Positions 9,651 through 60,056 are shown, counted from the first letter of the stretch. The stretch: 64,000 nucleotides of DNA from Heteronotia binoei (GCF_032191835.1 NC_083241.1:372001-436000); one strand, 5' to 3'. Numbers and translations are program-made. Notes: generated from the letters alone by a model not told the origin.

Positions 9651-12534
9651 CTACCCCCAATCCCGAGATGGGCTGTGCTTGATGAAGTGGCCCAGAGCCC
9701 TGCAAGAGCGTCAGTGGGGAGAGGACAGCCTGCTGAGGGAGCGGAGGGGGGGCGGGGGGAATATGGAGCTTTTGGCCTGGCCAGGTCTGGCCGGGGGAAC
9801 AGCTTCCGAGGGCAGCAGGAGACCAGTGGGCCCCCTATCCAGGGACGAATGGAGCTGCAACTCTCCTGAGCCCAGACCTTGGGACTCGCTTCAGGTGCTC
9901 CGGGGCTTGCCAGTGTTGCTGTCCTTGGGGAAATCCCTGCTGGGGGGGGGCGGGGCTGCTCCCTTAGCTTTTTTTAAAAGGGAGCAGGTGTGTGCCTGCT
10001 CCAGGAGGGGGATGTCCTGAAGCAGGGCTGCTGCCTAAAGACTGCGGAAGGGGAGAAGCTGACTTCCCCAGCTCACGGGGCATATTCTCCTCTTCCTATC
10101 CCTGGGCAGAGGGGGACTGGATGTTCCATGGCCCTAGACACATCTGCCACTCAATTCAAAAACAAGGGAAGAAGAACTAAGTCTGAATACAGCTTGAGAC
10201 ACCCTGGGGTGTACAACGCTTGTGTCCTTTGCAAGAGATGTGTTTCTAGTTCTCAGATCAAATGGCATCTGGTTTTTGCTGCATGTCGGGCCAGAGAATG
10301 GGGAAAGTCTGTCAGAGTCTGTCTGGCTGCAGCTGCTATCTCCTTCTAAGCTCTGTGCTTTCCCAGGAAGATGCCCGAGTGGCTGAAGCCTCTGCCAGCA
10401 AGGCATCTCTGCAGAAAGGTGGAGGAGCTGACGCTTTCCTGGGCTCCCGTCTGCTAAAACGTGTGCCACAGTTAGCTTTGTTTCCACACCACAGGAGAGG
10501 GGACAGAGTTCAGCTGAGCGTCTGGGGCCCTCCCTGCAGTCAAGGAAGCGCAGGGGGGAAGCCGGCACTCTCTGGCCTTCAAGGACAGTGGGTGCTTCGC
10601 TTGCAGAAGGGCAGCACGCCCAGCAACATACGAGGGGGTGAGGAGAAGAGGCACGAGCAGCCTGCACCCCTGGTTAGTGCCAAGGTGGCAGCAGCTTCCT
10701 TTCCCAGAGGGGTGTGCCCAGCGGCAGGCACAGACTGCAGCCTGAAGCCCTGGGCTGGTTGGACTGGCTCCTCCATCAGCCTCCAGGGGGCGGAAGGCTT
10801 TGCCGCCTTTCAGGGGAAGAGCTTTTGGGGCGGCTCCCAGCAGCCAGGGAGCAGTGCCTCTTCTTCCCAGCAGTGCTGGCCTTGCCTGCCAAAGGAAGCA
10901 CCTGGCTTCAGTGGGTGGGTGTGGCTGACATCCAGAGGAGGGGGAGGGCTGCCTGTCCCTCCCTGGTGGCTTCTGCTCCCGCACCTGGCCCAGATGGGGT
11001 CTCCAGTCACTCTCCACTCAGTGAGAGTCCCTGAGGGATGGGTCAGAACCAACGCAGTCCCAACTTTGCTCGGTATGTTCTGGGTGGCAGCACACAGGTG
11101 CCCCTGATGCTCAGTAGAGTCCCTCCCTGAGCCCCCGACTGCTCTGAAGCTGGGTGGATGCTGGGGTTAAAGCAGGATGTCTGAGGGAAGCTCCTGAGAG
11201 CCTCTTTCCTGGGTGGCCGGAGGATGCTGAGGCAGAAGGAAGCGTAATTACCTTGTTCTGCAACACCACACAGAATAAATGGCAGATCTCAGAGCTGCGA
11301 GATGTGAATGTCGGATGTTTGAGAGGAGCCAGACAGGAAGGGAGGCAAATAGATGGGGAGGGGGAGGTGGGAAGCAATTTTAAATGCCTCCTTCAAGCTG
11401 CTGGCTGGCTTGGCTGGGAGAAGTGCTTTAAAGAGAGCTGGGCGGGGGGGGGGGGCTTTGAGAGCCACCATTTGGCCACCCCCCTTTTAGGCTCGGCAGG
11501 TCTAGAGGGGAATCCCAATTCCAGGCAAAGCATGAGGAGGAATGCTTTCATCTTTTCTGTTCTTCAGAACGGAGAAACAGGTGGGGAATTGTGCATCGTT
11601 GCTGGTACTTGCTGGGGTTGGCTGCGTCTTAGGTGCAGCGGGCACAGGCTGGAGAAGGCTTACCCTAATGGGCTCATCAGTGCAGTAATGGGATTAGTGC
11701 CCTCGCTGCTCATGGTGCCTGCTGGCTCAGCCCATCTTGCTTCCGGCCGCTGTCTGCAGATGCCAAGAGCTGCCTTCTCCTTGCTGTTGATGTCTTGGGG
11801 GAAGGGGGGGAGGAGGGGGGGTGCCACCTTTGGGCCATGCTTGGCAAAGGGAGATGAGAGGGAGAGAGCAAGCAGCGGCCCCCACCGGGGTTGGAGAGTC
11901 CCCTTCCTGCTGCCCCCTATGGCCATTCGGGGGCCCCACCGCAGGAGGAGGAGGGCCTTCTACCAGCGCGTGGAACGCTTGCTGGGGGCGACCGGGGCTG
12001 ACTTCAAGTGGTTGTTTGCTGCTGACGGCTGGCAGGACCTGCTGGGTGAGATACGGGGTGGGGAGGGGGGAGGCATTGGAAAAGCAGGCCTGCTTCCCAG
12101 CAGCAGAGGCGGCAGTGTGGCAGGAAGGCTGGGGGGGCCACTGATGCCCCACTTTGCGTTAGGTCATCTGGGGACGCTGGCTTCCTCTGGCAAGCCCAGG
12201 ATCTGGCCCGGGGGGGGGGGCGGGTTGCACTTCAGCATTTCCTGGCACAGCTTTGCTGCTTGGGCAGCCCCCAGCCTTTCCGTGTTGCAGGTGGGTGATT
12301 CATACCCTCCCTCCCCCCCCGCAAAGAGTGCCAGGAGCTTCCCTGCAACTCCGGTGGGGGGACAAAGGGCAATTAACCGGGGTCGGGGGAGCTTATGCTG
12401 CCCCCAGTCAAGGTGTTACGTGGCTGCCACTCCTCCCCCCCCCCAAGTGGCTGTGGGGAGTGAGACTGCAGGGGGCCCCCTCACTGCCCTTTCCCCCCTT
12501 GGGCAAAGGGGAAGGTTTTCCCTCTGGCTCAGAG

Positions 12535-12751
12535 GAGGAGATGGGATTTATACCCTTGCCCTTCTCTGAGTGGCTCACCATCTCTTTTCCCTTCCTTTTG
12601 TGAAGAGACACCCTGTGAGGCAGGTGGGGCTGAGAGAGCAGCGCTTCCGAGAACTGTTACTGGCCCAAGGTCACCCAGCAGCTGCACATGGAGGAGTGGG
12701 AAATCAAAGCTGGTTCTCCCAAACTAGAGGCAGCGCTCCTAACCACCACCA
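12535..12751 (-). mobile_element. Squam3-like tRNA-derived SINE (older copy)
   Basis: Homologous to the SINEs at 26916-27188 and 59467. Confidence 0.75.
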
Positions 12752-13520
12752 GGGGTGTTGAACTCATTTGTTAGGAGGGCCGGATGTGCCCCAAATGGGA
12801 CTTCGTGGGGCCAGGCCCTGTGTGTCTTAAAATGAAAAGCCAGAGAAACTTTATAAAGGACACAGACAAACACAATTAAATATATGTTTTAACTTAAAAT
12901 ACAAACATGCTTAAAACTCTTCAAATATTTTGTTTAGAATGAAAAGGTGGAATGGTGGGATTTGGCAATGCAATTTTTAAAAAATAAAACAGGATCACAG
13001 CGGAAATTAAAAATATAAAATGCTCTAAGCTTGGGAAAACAGTGAAATGGCATTGCAAGCTTCTTCCCCCCCCCAAAGGGGGGGTCTACTCAGAATGGCA
13101 ATGGCTCTCCAGTGTAATATCCCCCTTTGACTGTGGGTCCCCAGGTTAGAGTTCTCAGTAGGTCAGGTCCATTCAGCAGAGACAAGAAGCTCCAAGAAGC
13201 ATGAGCTTCAGATGTCTATATAGGAACACTGAATGTGAAATTGGTCTCCACTCCATTGAAACACCCTGCAGAAACAGATAAAGTTGCAAGGAAAACATGG
13301 AATGGTTTTTCCTTTAAGGTCTCTGGGCACAGAGACCTTAATGGAAAATCCACTCCCCATTTTCCTGGTAGCTTTGCTTCCTGCTGCCGAGAACTGAAGG
13401 AGCAGGGAACTTAGTCAGCCTTGGAGCTTCAAAGGGTGCGGACAGGAGGGGGGGAGAAAAGAGCCCTGTGGGCCTGATTAAAACCCTGGGTGGGCCAGTT
13501 CCAGCCCCCTTCCCTGACAT
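12750..13520 (+). mobile_element. hAT-type MITE, copy 1
   Basis: Begins caggggtgttgaactc (Charlie-type TIR) and aligns by eye over ~700 bp with 20229-21070. Confidence 0.65.
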
Positions 13521-14176
13521 CCAGAAGCTCTCTTCCCTTGTGAAGAAAGAAGAGGCACCTGGAGGGCTGCCATGGCTAGGAGTGGAGCCAGGGTGGGTAC
13601 AGCATCTCCTGTTGCCCCGTCCTATCCACAATCTGGGGGGGGGGGTGTTCCTGGAAGCAGAATACTTGGCCACAGGACTCCCCCCTCTGCCTGCTGCCTC
13701 CTCACCTTGGTGGCCGGTTCCAGCTGGAGGGCTCTCTTCAGCAGCTCTGTGGCCGCCTGCTCCGCCAGCAGCTGAACAGAGAAGGAGGAGGAGGTCAGCT
13801 CTTTGCTGCCTCCAGCTTCCCCCCTCCCCGCGTCCGTCCTTCCATCCCTGCCAGGAGGCGCACCTTGCCTTTCCAGAAGAGGGCCTTGGGGGTGTGGGGA
13901 TCCAGGTGCAGGGCCTCATCGCAGGAGGCCAGGGCTTCCTCCCACAGCTGCAGCTGGGCGGCTGTACAGTTATTGAGACACTTGCCCCGGAGCTGTGGAT
14001 GTGAGCGGCAGAGCAACGGCAGCAGGGAGGGGGCCTGAGGTGGGTGTCCCTGGGAGGAGGAGAAAGAGGGGGCCTTCTGTCTTTTTTTTTGGGGGGGGGG
14101 GGCTCCTACCCAGCCTCATTGTCTACAATGGATCCATCGGCCCCCGCTTTCCTTCCAGTTCCCCCACTCCAGTCTA

Positions 14177-14360
14177 GGGCTGCCAATGTTGGGGGTGGTG
14201 GTGGTGGTCTGGAGCTCTACCCGAATTAGAGCTAATCTCCAGATTAGAGATCACTTTTTAGGGTTGCCAGCCTCCAGATGGGGCCTGGAGATCACCCAGA
14301 ACTCCTCTGGAGAAAATGGCTGCTTTGGAGAAAATGGCTGTCTCTCTCTCTGGCCTTGCA
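14177..14360 (+). mobile_element. TAGGGTTGCCA-type hAT-derived repeat fragments
   Basis: tagggctgcca / tagggttgcca termini. Related pieces occur at ~21515-21690 and ~42920. Confidence 0.4.
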
Positions 14361-14974
14361 CCCCACAGAGGTGCCCCCCCTCCCCACATTTCCAGGAGCC
14401 CTCCAGATGCCCCATTGCTTGCTGGGGGTCAAGGAGTGGGGGGGGGGGAAGGGGAGCAGTTGGGGGGCCCCCAAGAGCCTTCCCTCCTGGAGCTGAGCCA
14501 GGTGTCTCCTCCTCCGCCCCCTCCCTCAGGCTCTTCACGCTGAACTCTCCAGAATGGCTGGGCAGCAGAGGGGGGGCCAGCTGGCACTTGGAAGGGATTC
14601 ACCCGGACTGGCCAAGGGGGCAGACCCCCCAGTGGGAGCCAGGAGCCCCTGGAGTGCCCTCCCGCCCGAGTGAATCATCGCTGTTGCCTCCTGGGCAGGT
14701 GCTGGGAAGGCTGCGCCAGATTCTCCCAGGTAGGTAGCCCTGCTGGCTTCTCCGCAGCTGATCTGCGGCTCCTCTGAGCTCCCCCAGAAGTGGCTGGGCA
14801 GCCCTGGGCTGTGCAACTCCCTTCCTGGCAAGGAGGAAGGCTCCCCCCAGGCTGCCCCATGGGGGATGCATTGCAGAGGGGGGAGCAGCTGGGAGGCAAG
14901 GGCCTGGGGTCTCCCTTCAGTCACAGCCCCCTCCCCACATTGCACTTTTGATCCATGAAAAGGGAGCACAGCAG

Positions 14975-15495
14975 TAGGTTCTAATGGGATCAACATATCT
15001 ACAGGACCACCTCTCCCCCCATGTACCCCAAAGATCATGGAGATCTGGCTCACAACACCTACTGACTGTCCCTGGCCCTCAACCGGGGCCAGGGCCTTTT
15101 TGGCCTTGGCCCCAGCCTGGTGGAATCAGCTCCCTGTGGAGATCTGGTTCCTTACTGAACTGCTACCTTTTTGTAGGGCCTGTAAAACAGAGCTATTCCG
15201 CTGGGCCTTCGGTTGAGGCAGCGGGCGTCCTATTCTACCGCCTGGCCCCTCTGCTATGACATCACTTCTGCTGCGTTACCACCGTCTAAATTTCATTACA
15301 GTTAGACCTCAGTATGTTGTGAAATATATCCAACGATGCCACCATCTATAATTTGTTATAATTTGTATATAGCTTATTTGACTGTTTTATAATATTGCTT
15401 TTAATTGTATATTTTAAATTGATATTTTATTATGTTGTTATCCGCCATCAGCCCATTTCTGGGAAAATGTGGAATACAAATTAACTAAAATAAAT
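14975..15495 (+). mobile_element. L2 LINE 3' fragment with A-rich tail
   Basis: Encodes ..ALAPAWWNQLPVEI..FCRACKTELFRWAF, followed by an AT-rich tail. Confidence 0.7.
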
Positions 15496-16310
15496 AAAAA
15501 ACCGTCCAGCAGTTCAGCTACCTGGGGTGCATCATCTCCTCAGATGCTAAGATCGACAAGGAGATTGACAACAGGCTGGCAAAGGCAAACCGTGCGTTTG
15601 GCCGACTGCACAAAAGAGTATGGAGCAACAAGCATCTGAAAAAAGGCACAAAGATCAATGTTTACAAAGCGGTTGTGATGACAACCCTCATCTACGGCTC
15701 CGAATCGTGGGTTTTATACCGTCATCACCTGCGACTCCTTGAGCGCTTTCATCAGCGCTGCCTTCGCACCATCCTCAACATCCACTGGAGTGACTTTGTG
15801 ACCAACACTGAAGTTCTCAAGCGGGCGGAGGTTACCAGCATCGAGGCACTGCTGTTGAAGACGCAGCTGCGCTGGGCAGGGCATATTTCTAGGATGGAAA
15901 ACCACCGCCTTCCCAAGATTGCCCTGTATGGCGAACTCTCCACCGGCCATCGAAATAGAGGGGCACCAAAGAAGAGGTACAAGGACTCCTTGAAGAAATC
16001 CCTTGGCACCTGTCGCATCAACCATCACCAGTGGTCTGACCTAGCCTCAGATTGCAAAGCATGGAGGCACACCATCCACCAGGCTGTCTCTTCTTTTGAG
16101 AACGCACGCATAGCTGGTCTTGAGGACAAAAGGAGATTGAGGAAGAATCGCACTGCTACAGCACCAACCCCAAATCAGACTTTTCCCTGCAGCCACTGTG
16201 GCCGGACCTGCCTGTCCCGCATTGGTCTTGTCAGCCACCAGCGAGCCTGCAGCAGACGTGGACTATTGCACCCTTCTTAAATCTTCATTCGCGAAGCCAA
16301 GCCGAGAGAG
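15496..16310 (+). mobile_element. RTE-clade LINE, 5'-truncated, open reading frame intact
   Basis: Stop-free frame 15498-16280: TVQQFSYLGCIISSD..LIYGSESWVLY..QLRWAGHISRM..RLPKIALYGEL..GAPKKRYKDSLK, ending in the zinc knuckle CSHCGRTCLSRIGLVSHQRAC. Confidence 0.92.
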
Positions 16311-18189: not shown

Positions 18190-21100
18190 CTATGCAGCTA
18201 CGCCAACCGGGTGAAGCACACATCGCCGCTGCCGCCGCCTCCGTATAATGCGCTGCCTGGGGTGGCGGGGCTTGCGAAGAGAGTCTGCTAGGCAGAGAGG
18301 AGCCAGCAGCAGCCAGAGGTAGAGCAGAACGCAGGCCCAGCCAGAGGCCACCTTGACCCAGAAGGTGGACCAGCTGCCGTGGGTGAAGGCCGTCTCCAGC
18401 TCCACACTCTCGTAGCTGCGGGGAGAGCGAGAGGCTGGTCAGAGGCCCCAGAGAGCCCCCTGCGGGTGGAGGGGCAGCCAGGAACCCTGCCTACCTGAAC
18501 CAGTTGGTGAGGGTCATCATGACGTACAAGGAGGCCAAGAAGAACACAAAGTGGAAGGCTGAGTAGCTGTAGACCACCCGGTCAGCCTCGTCAGAAGGCC
18601 CTGGGCCAGGGACAAAAACCCCTTCTCCTCCTCAGAACACACGCTCAGCTGGCCCCCTGCCTCTCCTGGGGCACGAAGGGAGCCAGCCAGGAGAAGCTGG
18701 GAAGCTCCTCCCACTCAGCCTGCGCCTGCGCCCCCTCCGCACTCACCTGCCCGCTCCTCCTCTTCCCTTCGGGCTGGGCAACAGAAGCAGCAGGAGGCCT
18801 CCTGCAAGGGGAAGAGTTCCACTCAGAGCCACAGGAGGGGGGCAGGGGCAGGACTCCAGCTCACAGTGGGAAAAGGAGGAACCCCCCTGCCTCCCCCCCC
18901 CCACAATGGTACAGATTGGTCTGGCAGCGAAGAAAGCAGGGCGCACACAGCTTACCTGGCACACACGTGGACCAAACCATTCCTGCAAGGGGCAATGGGC
19001 GCAGGCTTTGGCCCACGTTTGCAAGTGTCATGCAGGAGTGAGCACATGGCCTGTGGGCAGAACAGACCAAGGACCCACCAAGAGCAGCAGGCAGCCCCAC
19101 CCACCTTGACTTCCAAGCTGTAGACCTTGACCATCCACAGAGGCCCAAAGAGCTCCGCCAGGAGAGAGGCTTCGTTGCTGCAGTCAGAGGAAAAGGGTGA
19201 GGAGGAAGGGAGCCACCCCTGGGGCTTGGGGCCAGGCCTCCTCTCGACCCGCCGGCCCTGGACAGCATCCCAGCAGAGCAGCTGGGACAGACCCCCCTCA
19301 GGTGGCTCAGCTCAGCAGTGGGGAAAGGAGGCTGGGGTCAGTTTAGCAAGGAGAGTTGCTCCAGGGGGAAACTGTCATGAGGGGAGGAAGGCTTCCCCCG
19401 CTCCATCCCCCTCTCTCAAGCTTCCTTCTTCCCCACTCCAGGAGACAGAGGGCAGCACCCACCAGGCCAAGAGGACGCAGGCATACATGACTCCTGCTCC
19501 CAAGGCGGCCACAGCCGTGTTCTCCCTCTGCATCCCGTTCCCATCCCTGCCGATGCTGGGGAAGCAAATGGTGAGGTTTTGCCCCTGGTACTGCACTGTG
19601 GGTGAGAAACGAGACAGGCGGTGAGCAAGGCTGAGGATCCGGCCCTTCAGAGCTCTCTGGGAGGCAGCGGCTGTGTGCTTCTCCCTGTTGGCGTAGCTGC
19701 ATAGCCTGGCGCCAGAGACTCTCCTGCAGGGAGTGCCAAGGGAGGGGTCTCAGCAGCCCCGCCCCCCTGTGCCAAGGGCACCAGTGCTGCCGCTCCCAGC
19801 CAGGAGGAGCCAGCAGAGGGCGCCAGGGAGGGACGCGGCTGCTGCTCCCGGAGTGGCAAAGGGAGGTGAGAGAGACTCGGACCTTTCTCCGGAGGCCGGC
19901 TGGAGAGGGCGGAGAAGGTCAGGTACATGATGTAGCAGCAGATGATGGAGGCCTGCAGGGGCCCCGAACTAGCTGGTCCTGGGGGCAGAGGGGGAAAGAG
20001 TCAAGCCCCCCCAGCAGCCACAGCATCTGGACAGAACTCACAAGGGCCCTCCTGCTGGAGGTGGACATGGCAAGAAGACGGGGCCTTTGAAGCCACAACC
20101 CCTGAGATTCAACCCCCGCTGCCCAGTTCCACTCCAAGGGTCCAGCCCGCCAGCTCCCTAAAGAGACTTATGCTCATGCAAAGCAAGGGAATGCTGGGTG
20201 TTCTCCCCACCCCCCTTTCGACACATCACAGCGCTGCTGAACTCACTTGTTACGAGGGACATAAATGGGGTTTTGTGGGGCTGGGCCACGTGTGTCAGAA
20301 AATCTCATGCCAGCTGGCAAATATGTGAACTTCATAAAGAATACAAACACAGTTATATATACAAATGCTTAAAACTCTTGTTTAAAATGAAAAGGTGGGG
20401 GAATAGTGGGATTTGGCTAAGCAATTTTTAAAGCAAAGCAGCAAGAAAAAGCACAAGGATCACAGCAGAAACTAAAAATATATACTAAAAATATAACATG
20501 CTCTGAGGCTAGGAAAACATGAAATGGCTGGGCACTGCAAGCTTCTCCCCTCCCCCCATCCCCTGGTCTACCCAGATTGGCAATGGCTCTCCAGTGTAAT
20601 ATCCCCCTTTGGCTGTGGGTTCCCAGGTGAGAGTCCTCACTAGGCACCAGTTCTCAGATGCATTCAGCAGAGACAAGTTGGCTCAAAGCATCAGGCCTTT
20701 GTTTGCAAGGAGACAACTTCAGGAAGCAACAGCTTCCACTGGCCATACAAACACTGGAAAGTGAAACTACTTGAGCTCCACTACATTGAAATACTTTGCT
20801 GCTGAGATAAAGTTGCAATGAATATGTGGAATGGATTTTCCATTAAGGTTTCTGGGACCAGAGTGCTCTATCTGGGTACAAAGACTTTAGTGGAAAATCC
20901 ATTCTGTATTTGGCTGCAGCAGGCAAAAGGAGCTGGGAATTTCAGCAGCCTCCTCAGAGCTTCAAAAGGTGAGGACAGAAGGGGGTGGGGGCGGAGGAAA
21001 AAGCCACAGGCCCGACTGAAGCCCTGGGTGGGCTGGCTGCGGCCCGCAAGCCCTACGTTTGACACCCTTGCATGACATTTACATGCATATTTCCCCCTTG

Positions 21101-23313
21101 TCCTACTTAGCACTGATGCAGCCCTTCCTGCCCTCCTCCTCATGATCTGCCCAAGTTCACAGAATCAGCTTTGTCGTCAGATGGCCATCTAGCCTCTGCT
21201 TAGAAACCTCCAAGGAAGGAGAGCCCACCCACCACCTCCCAAGGAGAAAGCCTGTTCCACTGAGGAACCGCTCTAATGGCCAGGAAGTTCTTCCTAACCT
21301 TTAGCCAACAACTCTTTTGATTTAATTCAACCTGTTTGTTCTGGTCTGACCTTCTGGAGCCACAGAAAACAGCTCCACACCATCCTCTACAGAACAACCC
21401 TTCAAGGCATACCCGAACTGACCAGATCACCTCTCAGCCGCCTCCTCTCCAGGCTACACATGCCCACCTCCTTCAACCTTTCCTCATAGGACTTGGTCTC
21501 CTTGCCGCTGAGCAGCCTTGCCAACCTCCAGGTGATAGCTGGAGATCTCTTGGGACAGAAAGAGATCACCTGGAGAAAAGGGCTGCTTTGGAAGGTGGAC
21601 TCTGTGGCCTTAGACCCAACTGAAGTCTCTCTCCTCCCCAGGCTGTGCCTCCAAATTCTCCAGGTGTTTCCCAACCCAGAGCTGGCACCTCCACTGCTGG
21701 ATGAAATCCAGGGTTCCCTGGAGGAAGGCCCAACCCCCCAGGACGTCTCTGGCTTTGAGGAGGGGACCACTCACATGCCGCCAAGCCCCCTCCCCCAGCA
21801 CTCACGGAGGCGGGCACAGGGTGTGACGGACACCAAGGACACCAGGAGGCAGAGGCTGCCGTTCAGCGCCAGCAGCCCCTTGTTGAGGACGCAGCCGCCA
21901 GGGTGGGTGTAGAAGTGGCACAGGAAGGCGAAAGCCGTGACGGCCACCGTGTAGAAGCCCAGCGTGGCCAGGAGCACTGCCAGGCACCAGCGCTTGTCTC
22001 TGGAGGCGCCCGTCAGCCTGGCAAGGGAAAGGGCGTCAGAGGGCCTCGCCCACCCCAGGGAGCCCTCTCCTCCCTCCCTCCCTCGGAGCAGCCCTGCCCC
22101 CTCACCAGTTCTTGTTCCAGGTGTGGGCAAAGGCTGTGATCAGCACCAGCTGCACCAGGATGAAGGCAAAGCCGCCACAGACCCCCACCAAGTGCCAGGC
22201 TGCAGGGGGCAAAGCCACATAAGACGGCAGAGCTCAGCCCCGCGGCCCTTCGCCTCAGAGCGGCCTCGCCAGGCTTTCCGGCTCCCGCTCAGGAGGAGGA
22301 AGCAGGGGTGCTCCTTGCGTACCTCGGATGAAGCGCCGGTCAGGAATGAAGAAGGCTGCTGCCCAGAGACCCACCAGGATGAGAAGCTTGAGGAGCCAGA
22401 ACCTGCAAGAGCCCCCGCCCCGGTCAGACACCTCCCCCACTCCAAAGGGCTAGGAAGTGCCCCCCCCCCCGTCCAGAGCCGCCCTCCTCCTTCCCCTCCT
22501 CACCCGTTGTGCAGCAGGGCTCGGAAGTTGGTGCTGGACTTGACGTTGACCAGGAAAGCGGCCTGGCCCAGGTGGAAGCAGGCGGTGCCAAAGCAGACTC
22601 TGTAGACAGCTGAGTAGCCCACCGGGAGGTTGCAGCTGGGCCCTCCCTGGAGATGCTCACACAGCACTGCATAAAGAGGCACCTGGGGGGGAAAGGCAGC
22701 CTGGGCTGTTGGGCGGCTGCTGCCGGTAGAGGCCGGCTTGGGAGGCAGGGCTGAGCGCTGAGACAGGCAAGTGCAAGGGAGAGCCAGGGGTCATGGGGCA
22801 TGAGCAGAGGGCCACCGCTGGGGACAGCAGCACCAGGCCTCCCCCCACCCCCACTCACGTTCTCTTGGAGGGCTTCCACCACCGTGCGAGAGAGCAGGAA
22901 GCAGCAGACAGCACAGGCCAAGACATGGAAGAGCACGTAGAGGAGCCGCGTGGCCGTGGACACCTTCAGGTGGAGGCTGCAGCAGCAGCGGCAGGGGCAG
23001 GAGGCACTGCAGGGAGCTGGGCTGCAGCAGCAGACCTGAGCGGGGGGAGAGAGGCACGGGACCGGGGGCAACTCCTTTGGCTCACTCCTTCTCCGGGACG
23101 GACTGCAGGGCCTCCCTCCCCCGCAGCAGGTGGGCTTACCTGGCTACACATCTCGCAAGAGGGTCTGCACCTCGACCCCTCAGCCCACAGGACTCTGGCC
23201 AGCCCACCCCACAAGCTCCTCAGCCCCAGGGGGCCGCCTCTGCGCCAAGGATTAGGGGGGATTGGGAGGCTCAGCCGCCATCTGCTGCTGGAGGGGGGGG
23301 GCTGGGCCAGCAT
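18190..23313 (-). CDS. SERINC4: Serine incorporator 4
   Basis: Minus exons: exon 1 ends at 23140 (ATG at 23313 or 23151, uncertain), then 23035-22859, 22682-22504, 22402-22323, 22199-22106, 22017-21806, 19978-19883, 19595-19463, 19177-19105, 18801-18747, 18600-18495, 18415-18190. Motifs [86 protein letters not shown]. Confidence 0.95.
20229..21070 (+). mobile_element. hAT-type MITE, copy 2 (in SERINC4 intron 6)
   Basis: Degenerate TIRs (..ctgaactcacttgtt and gtttgacacccttg). Shares its body with 12750-13520. Confidence 0.65.
21160..21500 (-). mobile_element. CR1 LINE 3' fragment
   Basis: Minus strand encodes [22 protein letters not shown], a CR1 ORF2 C-terminal motif. Confidence 0.85.
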
Positions 23314-23754
23314 GCCCCCTCCTCCCCACCAGCTGCTCCAGGGCAAAAACACACCGGCAGCCCTGGGAGGAGGCAGGGGTCAGAAATCAGCCTCCCCTTC
23401 CACCTGGTTAGTGCTCAGCCCCCCACTCAAGAGACGTCCTCCCTGTCTGGGCAGATCAAGGGGCTCCCTCCCTTCCTTCCGGCTGGCGGGGAGGATATTT
23501 GCCGCCTCGGCACTGTCTTCTGACCCATCTCCCCTGCCTCCTTCCTGCCCAAAGGGAAAGGCTCTGTGGGACCCCCCCTCCAGCTGCCGAGGTGGCTGGG
23601 GAAGCCAGTGGAGGGGGGGGAGGCAGAGCTCTCAGAGCCCCCAGCCATCCCGATNNNNNNNNNNNNNNNNNNNNNNNNNNNNNNNNNNNNNNNNNNNNNN
23701 NNNNNNNNNNNNNNNNNNNNNNNNNNNNNNNNNNNNNNNNNNNNNNNNNNNNNN

Positions 23755-26090
23755 CTGGGGGGGGGAGGGAGTGGGGGGGGCTGGGCACCTGTGGGGGGGC
23801 TTCCCTCTGCCTGTAGCAGCCATGGGGGAGAAAGGGGGAGGGGAAAGGAGAGGGGAGGGAGGGGGCCTGGGCACCTGGCTGGGGTCATGCAGGTCTGGGG
23901 GGGGGAGGGGAGTGGGGGGGGCTGGGGCACCTGTGGGGGGGCTTCCCCTCTGCCTGTAGCAGCCATGGGGGAGAAGGGGGGAGGGGAAAGGAGAGGGAGG
24001 AGGGGGGCCTGGAGCACCTGGCTGGGCTCTTGCAGGTCTGGGGGGGGAGGGAGTGGGGGGGGGCTGGGCACCTGTGGGGGGCTTCCCCTCTGCCTGTAGC
24101 AGCCATGGGGAGAAAGGGGGAGGGGAAAGGAGAGGGGAGGGAGGGGGGCCTGGGCACCTGGCTGGGTCATGCAGGTCTGGGGGGGGGAGGGAGTGGGGGG
24201 GGCTGGGCACCTGTGGGGGGGCTTCCCCTCTGCCTGTAGCAGCCATGGGGGAGAAAGGGGGGGAGGGGAAAGGAGAGGGGAGGGAGGGGGGCCTGGGCAC
24301 CTGGCTGGGTCATGCAGGTCTGGGGGGGGAGGGAGTGGGGGGGGGCTGGGCACCTGTGGGGGGGCTTCCCCTCTGCCTGTAGCAGCCATGGGGGAGAAAG
24401 GGGGGAGGGGAAGGAGAGGGGAGGGAGGGGGGCCTGGGCACCTGGCTGGGCTCTTGCAGGTCTGGGGGGGGGAGGGAGTGGGGGGGGGCTGGGCACCTGT
24501 GGGGGGGCTTCCCCTCTGCCTGTAGCAGCCATGGGGGAGAAAGGGGGGAGGGGGAAAGGAGAGGGGAGGGAGGGGGCCTGGGCACCTGGCTGGGGTCATG
24601 CAGGTCTGGGGGGGGGAGGGAGTGGGGGGGGGCTGGGCACCTGTGGGGGGGCTTCCCCTCTGCTGTAGCAGCCATGGGGGAGAAAGGGGGGAGGGAAAGG
24701 AGAGGGGAGGGAGGGGGGCCTGGGCACCTGGCTGGGCTCTTGCAGGTCTGGGGGGGGGAGGGAGTGGGGGGGGCTGGGCACCTGTGGAGGGGCCTTCCCC
24801 TCTGCCTGTAGCAGCCATGGGGGAGAAAGGGGGGAGGGAAAGGAGAGGGGAGGGGAGGGGGGGGGGCCTGGGCACCTGGCTGGGCTCTTGCAGGTCTGGG
24901 GGGGGAGGGAGTGGGGGGGGCTGGGCACCTGTGGAGGGGCTTCCCTCTGCCTGTAGGCAGGGCACATGGGGGGGGAGAGAGAGGGGGGGAGGGGAAGAGA
25001 GGGAGGGGAGGGGAGGGGGGGGGCCTGGGCACCTGGCTGGGCTCTTGCAGGTCTGGGGGGGGGAGGGGAGTGGGGGGGGCTGGCACCTGTGGAGGGGCTT
25101 CCCCTCTGCCTGTAGCAGCCATGGGGGAGAAAGGGGGAGGGGAAAGGAGAGGGGAGGGAGGGGGGCCTGGGCACCTGGCTGGGCTCTTGCAGGTCTGGGG
25201 GGGGGGAGGGAGTGGGGGGGCTGGGCACCTGTGGAGGGGCTTCCCCTCTGCCTGTAGCAGCCATGGGGGAGAAAGGGGGGGAGGGGAAAGGAGAGGGGAG
25301 GGGAGGGGGGCCTGGGCACCTGGCTGGGCTCTTGCAGGTGGGGGGGGCTTCCCCTCTGCCCATATGAGCCATGGGGGGGGGGCCTGTGAGGGAGCGGGGG
25401 AGGGGGATGGGGAATGGGGGGGGGCCTGGGCACCTGGCTGGGCTCATGCAGGTCTGGGGGGGTTCCCCTCTGCCCTAGCAGCCGGGGGGGGGGGAGAGGG
25501 GCCTGGGCACCTGTGGGGGGGCTTCCCCTCTGCCTGTAGCAGCCATGGGGAGAAAGGGGGGAGGGGAAAGGAGAGGGGAGGGAGGGGGGCCTGGGGCACC
25601 TGGCTGGGCTCTTGCAGGTGGGGGGGGGCTTCCCCTCTGCCCATATGAGCCATGGGGGGGGGGCCTGTGAGGGAGCGGGGGAGGGGGGATGGGGAATGGG
25701 GGGGGGCCTGGGCACCTGGCTGGGCTCATGCAGGTCTGGGGGGTTCCCCTCTGCCCTAGCAGCCGGGGGGGGGGGAGAGGGGCCTGGGCACCTGTGGGGG
25801 GGCTTCCCCTCTGCCTGTAGCAGCCATGGGGGAGAAAGGGGGGGGGGAAAGGAGAGGGGAGGGAGGGGGGCTGGGCACCTGGCTGGGCTCTTGCAGGTCT
25901 GGGGGGGGAGGGAGTGGGGGGGGGCTGGGCACCTGTGGGGGGGCTTCCCCTCTGCCTGTAGCAGCCATGGGGGAGAAAGGGGGGAGGGGAAAGGAGAGGG
26001 GAGGGAGGGGGCCTGGGCACCTGGCTGGGGTCATGCAGGTCTGGGGGGGGGAGGGAGTGGGGGGGGCTGGGCACCTGTGGGGGGCTCCCC
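23755..26090. repeat. G-rich minisatellite (VNTR), unit ~140-143 bp, about 16 units visible
   Basis: Recurring gcaggtctggggggg..ctgggcacctgtggg..cttcccctctgcctgtagcagccatggggg..gggcacctggctggg at ~142-bp spacing. The left end is hidden by a 100-N gap. Confidence 0.95.
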
Positions 26091-26099
26091 GAAGCCTTG

Positions 26100-26640
26100 C
26101 TCTCCCCTCCCCCCAAACGGCCCACCCCTGAGGGGAGCGGGGGCGTGGCCTAAGCCGCAGACCCCGCCCCCGGAGCTGCCGGCCCCCCGCAGGGCTGTCA
26201 CTCAACCCCCGGTTTCCGGAGGCGGGGAGAGGAAGTCCCGCCCTCCCCCTGCGGCGAGGCGGCTGCCGGAAGTGCGCGTCTTCCGCGACGGAAGCTGCGC
26301 TGTGGTGGGCGCGGGGCGATGGCGGCCGAGGGCGACGTGGAGCTGGAGCTGGAAGCGGAGCCGAATGGTTCGGCCACGGGCGGGGATGGCGCCGGGGGAC
26401 GCCCGGCCGAGAAGCCGCGCAAGCACGACAGCGGCGCCGCCGACCTCGAGCGCGTCACCGACTACGCGGAGGAGAAGGAGATCCAGAGCTCCAACCTGGA
26501 GACGGTGCGCCCGCAGGGAGGGAGGGCGGGGCGGGCGGAGAGGAGAGCCACGCAGAAGAAGCGCCAGACCCAGAAGACGAGGCAGGGAGGGAGGGAGGGG
26601 AGAGGTGGAGAGAAGGCCGCTTTCCACGCATCCTCCAAGC
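26100..26640 (+). promoter_or_regulatory. HYPK CpG-island promoter
   Basis: High CpG density, ETS motifs (ccggaagt, ggaagt) and GC boxes upstream of the ATG at 26319. Confidence 0.75.
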
Positions 26641-29167
26641 TGCCCGCTGCTTGGCTTGGCAAAGTGCTTTCAAGAGAGCGATGGCTTCTCCAAGTCAGCC
26701 GGGGGGGGGGCGGGCTTCGAGAGCCACACAATGTGTGGAGGAGCTCCATGCGGCTCCTGAACCACTGTTTGGACACCCCTGCTATAGACTACCAGATGCC
26801 AATTTTGATCTGTGTTAAGGGGTTGTCAATAAATACAGTAATTCTGCCCTTATACAAACCCCCACTGAGGCCCCATTTGGAATAATGTGTACAGTTTGGG
26901 ATGACACCTTTTAAAAGAAGATATTGGATTTATATCCCGCCCTCCACTCCGAAGAGTCTCAGAGCGGCTCACAATCTCCTTTCCCTTCCTCCCCCACAAC
27001 AGACACCCTGGGAGGTGGGTGGGGCTGGAGAGGGCTCTCACAATAGCTGCCCTTTCAAGGACAACCTCTGCCAGAGCTACGGCTGACCCAAGGCCATTTC
27101 AGCAGGTGCAAGTGGAGGAGTGGGGAATCAAACCCGGTTCTCCCAGATAAGAGTCCGCACACTTAACCACTACACCAAACTGGCTCTCCCCAAACTGGCA
27201 TTGAAGAGTTGGGAACAGGAAAGAAAAAACATGTCTTGCTTTTTGGTTTCAGTAATGGTGATTGAGGTATGAATAATAGAGTTGGAAGGGACCTCCAGGA
27301 CCATCTAGTCCAACCCCCTGCAAAATGCAGGAAACCCACAAATACCTCCCCCCCACACACACCCAGTGACACTTGCTCCATGTAAGAAGATGAGGGCGGG
27401 GGACCTTCCACGGCCCCTGGCCAAACTGGGCTTGAGAAAAATTGCTCCCTGATCCCAAAGTGGCAAACAGTTTCCCTGGGTGTGTGAGAAAGGGCCATGA
27501 GAACTAAGCATGATGCAACCCTTCCTGCCCTCTTCTCACAATCTGCCTAAATTCAAAGAATCGTAACCAAACCAATATAACCCTTTGAACAGCTGCTTCA
27601 AACATACGTTTTTGCTAATACAAATAATATTTTTTCTTACAAAATCTCTCTGATACTTAATTCTATAGTGAATCAGCCTTCTCTACAACACAGAAAGAAC
27701 TTTTCACCTTCTCCCTTACTGGCAGTGGATGTATGACAATGTACTGCTGGACTCAGAGTTGCTTCTGTTTCTTTACACAGTGTGTCGCTGCCTTGTAGGG
27801 CTCACTGCCATGAACTGGGATGAGATGGATTTAAAAAGGGGGTTGGATAGATCTAAGCAGCCCCATGGCGCAGAGTGGTAAAGCAGCAGTACTGCAGTAC
27901 TGTGATCTGAACTCTCAGCTCACGACCAGAGTTCGATTCCAGCAGAAGCTGGATTCAGGTTGCCGGCCCAAGGTTGACTCAGCCTTCCATCCTTCCGAGG
28001 TCGGTAAAATGAGTACCCAGCTTGCTAGGGGGAAGAGTGTAAAAGACTGGGGAAGGCGATGGCAAACCACCCCGTAAAAAGTCTGCCGTGAAAATGTTGT
28101 GAAACGTCACCCCAGAGTCAGAAACAACTGGTGCTTGCACAGGGGACCTTTCCTTTCCTGGATAGATCTGGTTTTGGCTATTAGCCATGGTAGTAAAATG
28201 GAGTCTCTGGATTCAGATGCAGCATCCCTCTGATCATGCTGTGTTGCGGAGCAATCAGCAGGCCCCCATGTGGGCTTTCATCTGGCATCTGAGTAAGGAA
28301 AGAGGACGCTGGACTGTGTGTGTGCGATCCAGCATGGCTCCTCTAAGGGATCTTATGTGTCAAGTATATGATGTGGGTAGTCTGGCAGATGGACACTTGA
28401 TGAATTAATCACACATTCTGGAATCGCCTCTCCCCCCTAACAGGCCATGTCTGTGATCGGAGACAGAAGATCCAGAGAGCAGAAAGCAAGGCAGGAGCGG
28501 TGAGTTCTTCCTGTCATCGGCTGCTTTCTCAGCCACCCCGTAAGAGCTGCCGTGTGCCAGCTGTGGGCTATGAAGGTGGCTTGGTGCCAAAGCTGATCCC
28601 TATAGTTACTGCAAGCGTTTGGCGTTTTCCATAAAGGTTTTACACCTGTTTTAACTGCAGGAGGAGGCTGTACATGTTTCAAATGTTAAGAAATTAGTGT
28701 AACCATAAATCTTTAATTGCATCTTTTTGCTTGCTTTACAGCAGCAGAAACCATGGGGGAGGGCAGGATGTAAGTCAAATAAAATCAAACTTCAGTTTGC
28801 TAGTTCAGCACCAGAATTCTGCTTCTGTTCAGTGTGCTGCAGCCCAAATGCTGCCGGTTGTGGAGCATCAGACTTTATTGTGGAGTTGGATGTTGTCTGG
28901 GGGCCCTGAATAGCTTTTCCTTTTGCTTTCAGAGAGAAGGAACTGGCCAAAGTTACAATCAAGAAAGAAGATTTGGAGCTGATTGTGAGTCTTAGGTTTG
29001 CCAGTGGAAACAGCTTTCTGCAGGTATGACACAGCAGGCGCAGCCCCAACTCTTTTTTGTTTTCCCCACAGATGAATGAGATGGAGATATCTAGGGCAGC
29101 AGCTGAGCGCAGCTTACGGGAACACATGGGAAATGTCGTGGAGGCACTGATCGCCCTTACCAATTGA
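26319..29167 (+). CDS. HYPK: Huntingtin-interacting protein K (129 aa)
   Basis: Exons 26319-26504, 28444-28499, 28933-28984, 29072-29167. KPRKHDSGAADLERVTDYAEEKEI..AMSVIGDRRSREQK..EKELAKVTIKKEDLELIMNEMEISRAAAERSLREHMGNVVEALIALTN*. AATAAA at 29403-29408. Confidence 0.98.
26800..26915 (+). mobile_element. CR1 LINE RT fragment, interrupted by later SINEs
   Basis: ILPLYKPPLRPHLE..CVQF motif. A further CR1-like piece (gatggatttaaaaaggggttggat) lies near 27800-27855. Confidence 0.6.
26916..27188 (-). mobile_element. Squam3-like SINE, full length
   Basis: Reverse complement reads gagagccagtttggtgtagtggttaagtgtgcggactcttatctgggagaaccgggtttgattcccc..gggatataaatccaatatcttc, with A-box, B-box and tail. 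Confidence 0.9.
27275..27560 (-). mobile_element. CR1 3' end fragment
   Basis: atagagttggaagggacctccaggaccatctagtccaaccccctgc. Confidence 0.75.
27857..28159 (+). mobile_element. Sauria/Squam1-like tRNA-derived SINE with RTE(BovB)-like tail
   Basis: A-box tggcgcagagtgg, B-box gagttcgattcc, and tail accccagagtcagaaacaactgg..ggggacctttcctttcc. Confidence 0.8.
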
Positions 29168-59466: not shown

Positions 59467-60056
59467 CCAGTTTGGTGTAGTGGTTAAGTGTGTGGACTCT
59501 TATCTGGGAGAACCGGGTTTGATTCCCCACTCCTCCACTTGCAGCTGCTGGAAAGGCCTTGGGTCAGCCAGAGCTCTGGCAGAGGTTGTCCTTGAAAGGG
59601 CAGCTGCTGTGAGAGCCCTCTCCAGCCCCACCCACCTCACAGGGTGTCTGTTGTGGGGGAGGAAGGGAAAGGAGATTGTGAGCCGCTCTGAGACTCTTCG
59701 GAGTGGAGAGAGGGATATAAATCCAATATCTTCATCTACCTCACAGGGTGTCTCTTGTGGGGGAGGAAGGGAAAGGAGATTGTGAGCCGCTCTGAGACTC
59801 TTCAGAGTGGAGGGAGGGATATAAATCCAATATCTTCATCTACCTCACAGGGTGTCTGTTGAGGGGGAGGAAGGGAAAGGAGATTGTGAGCCGCTATGAG
59901 ACTCTTCGGAGTGGAGGGCGGGATATAAATCCAATATCTTCATCTACCTCACAGCGTGTCTGTTGTGGGGGAGGAAGGGAAAGGAGATTGTGAGCTGCTC
60001 TGAGACACTTTGGAGTGGAGGGCGGGATATAAATCCAATATCTTCTTCATCTTCTC
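59467..60056 (+). mobile_element. Squam3-like SINE with four tandem 3' tails
   Basis: Normal head and body, then ctcacagggtgtc..ggatataaatccaatatcttc starting at 59636, 59740, 59844 and 59948 (104-bp period). Confidence 0.9.

Follow-up and report, generated by a model that had tools for sequence, protein, structure and literature searches.

Four exons of a probable decayed FKBP8 paralogue between PDIA3 and SERINC4 in the gecko Heteronotia binoei

Results

The stretch of DNA analysed here is a 64,000-nucleotide segment of the Heteronotia binoei genome (GCF_032191835.1 NC_083241.1:372001-436000), which we call the window and whose positions are counted from its first letter. Between PDIA3 and SERINC4 it carries four pieces that correspond to successive exons of an FKBP8-family gene, i.e. 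a first exon, two exons encoding tetratricopeptide repeats (TPR exons 5 and 6) and an exon that opens with a HAELS helix (exon 7). HYPK begins at 26319 on the plus strand and SERINC4 lies on the minus strand; exons 1 and 7 share the strand of HYPK, whereas exons 5 and 6 do not. The original prediction, made from the sequence alone, had placed a relic of an FKBP8-type paralogue in this interval without saying on which strands its segments lie. The intact gene found at the same place in birds upholds that proposal.

All comparisons were made exon by exon. Regions syntenic with the window were fetched using HYPK exon 1 (26319-26504) as the anchor, the exons of the galah were searched against the window using tblastn, and profiles made for each exon from three to five birds (from one passerine for exon 1) were run against all 2544 six-frame pieces of the window. 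Human FKBP8 was compared solely through the outputs of searches against PDB.

The bird gene sits beside SERF2, SERINC4 and HYPK in galah, passerines and ducks. In the galah (locus L003, WBNI01000195.1:253620-255200) a gene with FKBP_C and TPR domains lies upstream of a 56-residue gene, SERF2, followed by SERINC4 (minus), HYPK (plus) and MFAP1 (minus). The same gene is present in three passerines (L015, L017 and L018), and in ducks (L011 and L013) the last exons of a 386-residue RefSeq product enter the locus. The gene shares its strand with HYPK, which in our window is on plus, and the ancestral orientation would therefore be plus. Among solved structures, the best natural single-domain matches of the galah exons are to FKBP8: exon 4 to human FKBP8 with E 1.3e-10, exon 5 with E 4e-9 and exon 2 to the FKBP8 peptidyl-prolyl isomerase (PPIase) domain with E 1.9e-4. 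Since its exons match FKBP8 while its locus is next to SERF2, SERINC4 and HYPK, the bird gene is a member of the FKBP8 family in another neighbourhood. We take FKBP8 itself to adjoin ELL on human 19p13, and the order PDIA3-ELL3-SERF2-SERINC4-HYPK to be that of human 15q15; given these positions, the bird gene would be expected to be an old duplicate of FKBP8. The avian paralogue has a tail rich in proline and arginine that closes with PQEGAA or PEGAA, and it carries no membrane anchor (L010:1-400, L011:1-181, L013:1-151 and L003:1310-1545). It may be the gene that databases call FKBP16, which we keep as a candidate name; our literature search found no vertebrate FKBP16 treated as an FKBP8 paralogue, the name being used for a plant lumenal FKBP or as an alias of AIP.

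The first exon of the bird gene is recognizable in the gecko. Exon 1 occupies 11790-12045 on the plus strand, as an open frame of 85 codons that starts at the ATG at 11790, has a second in-frame ATG at 11919, and ends with ...KWLFAADGWQDLL plus one G, i.e. in phase 1, before a GTGAGA donor at 12046. The donor of bird exon 1 is likewise in phase 1. Using galah exon 1 in tblastn, we found the best match of the window at 12012-12041 (plus), where 9 of 10 residues are identical (E 0.001; LFAADGWQDL in the gecko and LFAADGWSDL in the galah), and the passerine exon 1 profile gave E 0.002. In a global alignment 31 of 73 residues are identical to the bird, with the homology starting at the bird start codon. 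The family-specific first exon (..FY.R.E.L...LFA.D.W.DL.G with a phase 1 donor) is thus present in the gecko, and the exon before the PPIase domain that had been recognized by its WxD motif is real. Exon 1 matches nothing besides the bird gene, with no FKBP8 match in any search run. When exon 1 was queried within its long open frame, a word search came back blank, which says little as the length window of 0.55-1.75 times the query excludes full-length relatives.

Exon 5 is the piece most clearly related to FKBP8. It covers TPR2 and the start of TPR3 in 43 codons at 13864-13992 on the minus strand, flanked by a CAG acceptor (13995-13993) and a GT donor (13863-13862), and was identified through the FKBP8 match in PDB, Pfam TPR_1, galah tblastn and the bird profile. 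The minus-strand reading of 13992-13864 is LRGKCLNNCTAAQLQLWEEALASCDEALHLDPHTPKALFWKGK; aligned, it reads LRGKCLNNCTAAQLQL--WEEALASCDEALHLDPHTPKALFWKGK (LRGKCLNN...KALFWKGK), with a deletion of two codons and W in place of R. Of the natural proteins with solved structures, human FKBP8 matches it best, at residues 179-223 (E 1.2e-4), and 23 of 43 residues (53%) are identical over the full exon with a single 2-residue gap; the same gap is present against the birds. The FKBP8 alignment also confirms the change from R to W that had been noticed in KALF(R/W)KGK. The Pfam TPR_1 match is weak (E 1e-3). Galah exon 5 hits 13989-13864 (minus) with E 2.5e-9 in tblastn and the bird exon 5 profile reaches E 1e-11, both being the best in the window. 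In the alignment, about 14 opening codons of bird exon 5 are unrecognizable upstream in the gecko. Broader searches with the TPR exon were not informative. The best 150 matches of a profile search against 1.84 billion representatives were all long multi-repeat TPR proteins and useless for family assignment; the look-alikes in the ESM Atlas were generic short TPR clusters only; and a word search with its frame was blank, under the same length window as for exon 1 and with as little weight.

Exon 6 follows after an intron of 92 bp (13772-13863, minus), which is 78-81 bp long in birds. It encodes helix B of TPR3 in 22 codons at 13706-13771 on the minus strand, is in phase 0 on both sides, and has a ttcag acceptor and a GTGAGG donor. 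The minus-strand reading of 13771-13706 is LLAEQAATELLKRALQLEPATK, aligned as LLAEQ----AATELLKRALQLEPATK with a deletion of four codons at the turn joining helices A and B; this deletion is seen against both FKBP8 and the birds. Its opening nine bases, CTGCTGGCG, are equal to those of the birds, and 14 of its 22 residues are identical to the passerine. The best matches of bird exon 6 in the window are at 13771-13706 (minus), both by galah tblastn (E 0.011) and by the bird profile (E 0.12). The galah exons 1, 5 and 6 all land in tblastn on segments named in the original prediction. Searched alone, exon 6 matches designed TPRs only, and the relic pieces other than exon 5 gave nothing specific.

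The two TPR remnants are FKBP8-like, and each lacks the turn between its helices; no match was found in the window for TPR1. The TPR pattern is 34 residues long. Judging from the Pfam alignment and this pattern, each of the two in-frame deletions falls where helix A ends and the turn follows, one in TPR2 and the other in TPR3. The losses of about two and four residues that had been read from the sequence are thus real, as they appear as gaps against FKBP8 and against the birds.

Exon 7 encodes the post-TPR helix and the tail. It lies at 14530-14673 on the plus strand, with 47 codons and a TGA stop at 14671-14673, behind a cag acceptor at 14527-14529 in phase 0. It reads ALHAELSRMAGQQ..., with ALHAELSR immediately after the acceptor, as in the conserved helix xIHAELSK that comes right after TPR3. 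The bird exon 7 profile has its best match in the window at 14497-14670 (plus; E 0.024), and the bird acceptor is in the same phase. The residues that follow HAELS number about 33-42 in birds and 40 up to the stop in the gecko; the gecko stop is therefore near the normal end and is no lesion in itself. The stop had been correctly located but should not be counted as a defect, and the suspected frameshift of the tail arose from assuming the architecture of FKBP8, which the anchorless bird paralogue does not have. Likewise, nothing in the bird gene corresponds to a supposed tail-anchor remnant with the motif KWL at 14788-14830 (plus); the last bird exon has about 8-12 residues ending in EGAA before the stop, and the bird tail is not hydrophobic. 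We do not count this piece in the gene, leaving four segments of the four or five first proposed. No hydrophobic stretch of membrane-spanning length follows the HAELS exon in either frame examined.

The profiles of exons 1, 5, 6 and 7 all peak at these pieces, within 2.8 kb. In the control searches, using the reversed window and four other vertebrate loci, the best E was only 0.15-7. The motifs HAELS, H[AT]ELSR, DGW.DL and LFA.D.W.DL are each found a single time in a six-frame reading of the window, compared with 0.00-0.06 expected from block shuffles (0.06 for HAELS). All six splice sites and their phases agree with those of the birds, i.e. phase 1 at the exon 1 donor and phase 0 at the 5/6 and 6/7 junctions, in the gecko as in galah, duck and passerine.

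Three exons are missing. Galah exons 2, 3 and 4 found nothing credible in the window by tblastn, and the best profile matches for these exons (E 0.15-1.2) are scattered over unrelated places. One exon 2-like match at 15129-15275 (minus) was rejected, as it has 8.8 bits and two gaps and falls within a stretch resembling a short interspersed nuclear element (SINE). No FKBP_C and no further TPR match was found by Pfam in open reading frames of at least 30 residues between 9.2 and 21.9 kb on both strands. The run of N nearest to the relic begins at 23655, with none within 9 kb. As there is neither an open reading frame, Pfam or profile match nor a nearby assembly gap, the three exons for the PPIase domain and TPR1, exons 2-4, are absent.

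The remaining exons cannot be joined. Exons 5 and 6 are inverted as a block relative to the flanking exons 1 and 7. Even with the block turned back, the phase 1 donor of exon 1 has no in-frame acceptor at exon 5, and if exon 1 is spliced to exon 7 a stop is met after four codons. With no in-frame route between its pieces, the locus cannot make an FKBP-TPR protein. The layout would be explained by one inversion and a deletion; in this simplest history 12046-13705 would contain the left breakpoint of the inversion as well as the deletion of exons 2-4, and 13993-14529 the right breakpoint.

The interval of the relic is rich in repeats. The remnant of intron 1 at 12046-12562 is unique sequence, with no FKBP_C or TPR match in its open frames and no match to bird exons 2-4. 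It is followed by a SINE insertion at 12563-12749, with copies at 26957-27173, at 59477-59693 and in an array in a FURIN intron, and by a second transposable-element insertion at 12750-13507, which has a 65% identical copy at 20229-21045 and contains a hairpin at 13280-13375 (inverted repeat I1). Between exons 5 and 7, a fragment of another repeat at 14264-14386 recurs with 67% identity at 21518-21640. Two unrelated repeat families thus each have a copy within the relic and another close to the 3' part of SERINC4, alike in order and orientation. We considered whether 12750-13507 and 14264-14386 are parts of one element carrying the exons, and rejected this, as there is no homology between the intervening sequences 13507-14264 and 21045-21518. 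Just downstream of the relic, a 260-codon open frame at 15498-16277 (plus) resembles the C-terminal part of the reverse transcriptase of a long interspersed nuclear element, and the SINE-like stretch, at about 14980-15300, lies ahead of it.

The squamate loci fetched with the HYPK anchor were those of Zootoca (L001), Sphaerodactylus (L002), Gekko kuhli (L019), Anolis (L020) and two phrynosomatids (L021 and L022), each with a 10-kb flank that ends in or just past SERINC4. The window is about 76% identical to each of Gekko kuhli and Sphaerodactylus in alignable DNA. Among galah, duck and passerine, SERF2 exons 2 and 3 show 95-100% identity (L003:2018-2490; L010:809-1287), and nothing in the window matches these bird exons at E 0.05 or better. 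A SERF2-like match at 11784-11716 (minus) is regarded as chance, since it fails this threshold and is unlike the lizard SERF2 remnant. In the phrynosomatids (L022:155-220; L021:510-614) only a decayed piece resembling SERF2 exon 2 is seen just past the SERINC4 3' end, with 50% identity in one assembly and with 34% identity and two stops in the other. In squamates, SERF2 may have been lost or moved. Human presumably carries ELL3 in this interval; no ELL or Occludin_ELL Pfam match was found on either strand between 9200 and 21900, i.e. from PDIA3 to SERINC4. Birds have a gene with Ras/Roc/Arf Pfam matches (small GTPase type) between SERF2 and SERINC4 (L010:2000-4902, minus; L013:1740-4984, minus; left ends of L005-L008), and the 15.4-21.9 kb interval of the gecko window gave no such match. 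Between SERINC4 and HYPK, 23430-26030 is a long tandem array rich in G and P, with an open frame of 867 codons on the minus strand and a run of N at 23655-23754 inside it; Gekko kuhli and Sphaerodactylus are unaligned over the array. In Sphaerodactylus (L002:19884-22884) FURIN directly follows MFAP1, an arrangement unlike that in human, where we take FURIN to be at 15q26.

Discussion

Our data indicate that the locus is very probably what is left of a decayed sauropsid paralogue of FKBP8 (FKBP38), with exons lost and inverted in this gecko. The matches support the segments as belonging to an FKBP8-family gene other than FKBP8 itself. Pseudogene status is justified by the missing exons 2-4, the inverted exons 5-6 and the lack of in-frame splicing of the remainder. 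The proposal of a unitary pseudogene is borne out as far as disabling lesions at the ancestral locus are concerned, i.e. the exon loss, the inversion, the broken splice path and the transposable elements. We infer that no intact copy of the paralogue is present elsewhere in the Heteronotia binoei genome and that the relic would be transcriptionally silent.

Several observations weigh against this interpretation. Exons 6 (E 0.12) and 7 (E 0.024) are not significant alone in the profile searches, their support being position, phase and motif. Gecko exon 5 is about equally similar to human FKBP8 (23/43) and to the bird gene (22/43), and for this reason the case for orthology with the bird gene is carried by exon 1 and synteny. 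The inversion and the deletion are known from one assembly only. In addition, the four surviving exons are free of premature stops and frameshifts, their splice sites are intact and their indels are all in frame, so that the decay looks mild apart from the structural lesions. The intact frames and splice sites fit a fairly recent loss, which is weak evidence given that the region is GC-rich and has long open frames in every frame.

The single assembly leaves room for an artefact, in which the animal has an intact gene and a local misassembly inverted a piece of about 2 kb and dropped the PPIase exons, and an interval so rich in repeats can confuse assemblers. We nevertheless hold this to be very unlikely: no run of N lies within 9 kb, turning exons 5-6 back does not give exon 1 an in-frame acceptor, the TPR deletions persist, and the first codons of exon 5 (about 14) stay unrecognizable. 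The preserved ATG, 85-codon frame and donor of exon 1, together with the preservation of every splice site, might instead suggest that the locus is still used in a reduced form, giving a short exon 1 peptide or a non-coding RNA from the old promoter. Yet open frames are common in all frames of this stretch, and splicing from exon 1 to exon 7 quickly meets a stop; we regard such use as slightly less likely still.

Could the relic be a dispersed or segmental duplicate of FKBP8 itself that decayed later? Exon 5 would fit this, with its 53% identity to human FKBP8 and its KALF.KGK, where birds have RALLRRGQ. However, the relic occupies the position of the bird paralogue beside SERINC4 and HYPK, its exon 1 (LFAADGWQDL; 31/73) matches the bird gene and nothing else, and NNC.AA, EEAL, LLAEQ and HAELSR are common to relic and birds and not to FKBP8, which makes such a duplicate extremely unlikely. 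That the pieces are chance TPR-like matches in GC-rich DNA has a negligible probability. The TPR exon alone does match many generic TPR proteins, and exon 6 alone only designed ones, but four independent bird-exon profiles peak within 2.8 kb with matching splice sites and phases, and with clean controls and motifs unique in the window this explanation is in effect already refuted.

We return to the decayed sauropsid paralogue. The relic resembles the avian FKBP8-like gene in its neighbourhood, its exon 1 signature, the positions and phases of its introns (exon 1, 5/6 and 6/7), its HAELSR helix and its short anchorless tail. The avian gene is intact, with FKBP_C and three TPRs, whereas the gecko copy has no exons 2-4, an inverted 5-6 block, TPR deletions and transposable elements. 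Among natural proteins of solved structure, human FKBP8/FKBP38 (PDB 5MGX, 9XJ8 and 2AWG) is nearest to the relic and to the bird gene alike. It shares with the relic the TPR2 exon, 53% identical over 43 residues (KCLNN, SC and KALF.KGK), and the HAELS helix after TPR3. It has a C-terminal membrane anchor, which the bird orthologue of the relic lacks, and does not match relic exon 1. Like known unitary pseudogenes, the relic still has introns and stays at the ancestral locus, where it has lost exons, been rearranged and taken up transposable elements; it differs from them in that its internal exon block is inverted and its surviving exons have no stop or frameshift. The case is one of ordinary gene loss, slightly unusual for its inverted exon block.

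We propose the following history. The ancestral gene would have been on the plus strand between PDIA3 and SERINC4, immediately upstream of SERF2, an arrangement still seen in birds. Its product would have comprised an N-terminal region, a PPIase domain of the FKBP type and three TPRs, ending in a short tail with no membrane anchor. In the gecko, exons 2-4 would have been deleted together with, or beside, the inversion of the exon 5-6 block, and a SINE and another transposable element would have come to sit within the gene. Deletions of two and four residues have stripped both remaining TPRs of their inter-helix turns. The locus would then be without protein function and stand as a record of the loss of the gene.

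Conclusion

The relic may also be one sign of a wider squamate erosion of this chromosomal block, a tentative and rather doubtful idea at present. If it is true and SERF2 has no copy elsewhere, squamates would have lost a highly conserved gene along with the FKBP8 paralogue. For annotation, the relic accounts for TPR-like open frames that no gene model would join. The paralogue itself is almost unstudied and is, to our knowledge, absent from mammals. As it lacks the membrane anchor that defines FKBP38 biology, its description should be useful to annotators and to students of the gene. The relic documents the presence of this paralogue in the common ancestor of birds and lizards and its later dismantling in at least one gecko.

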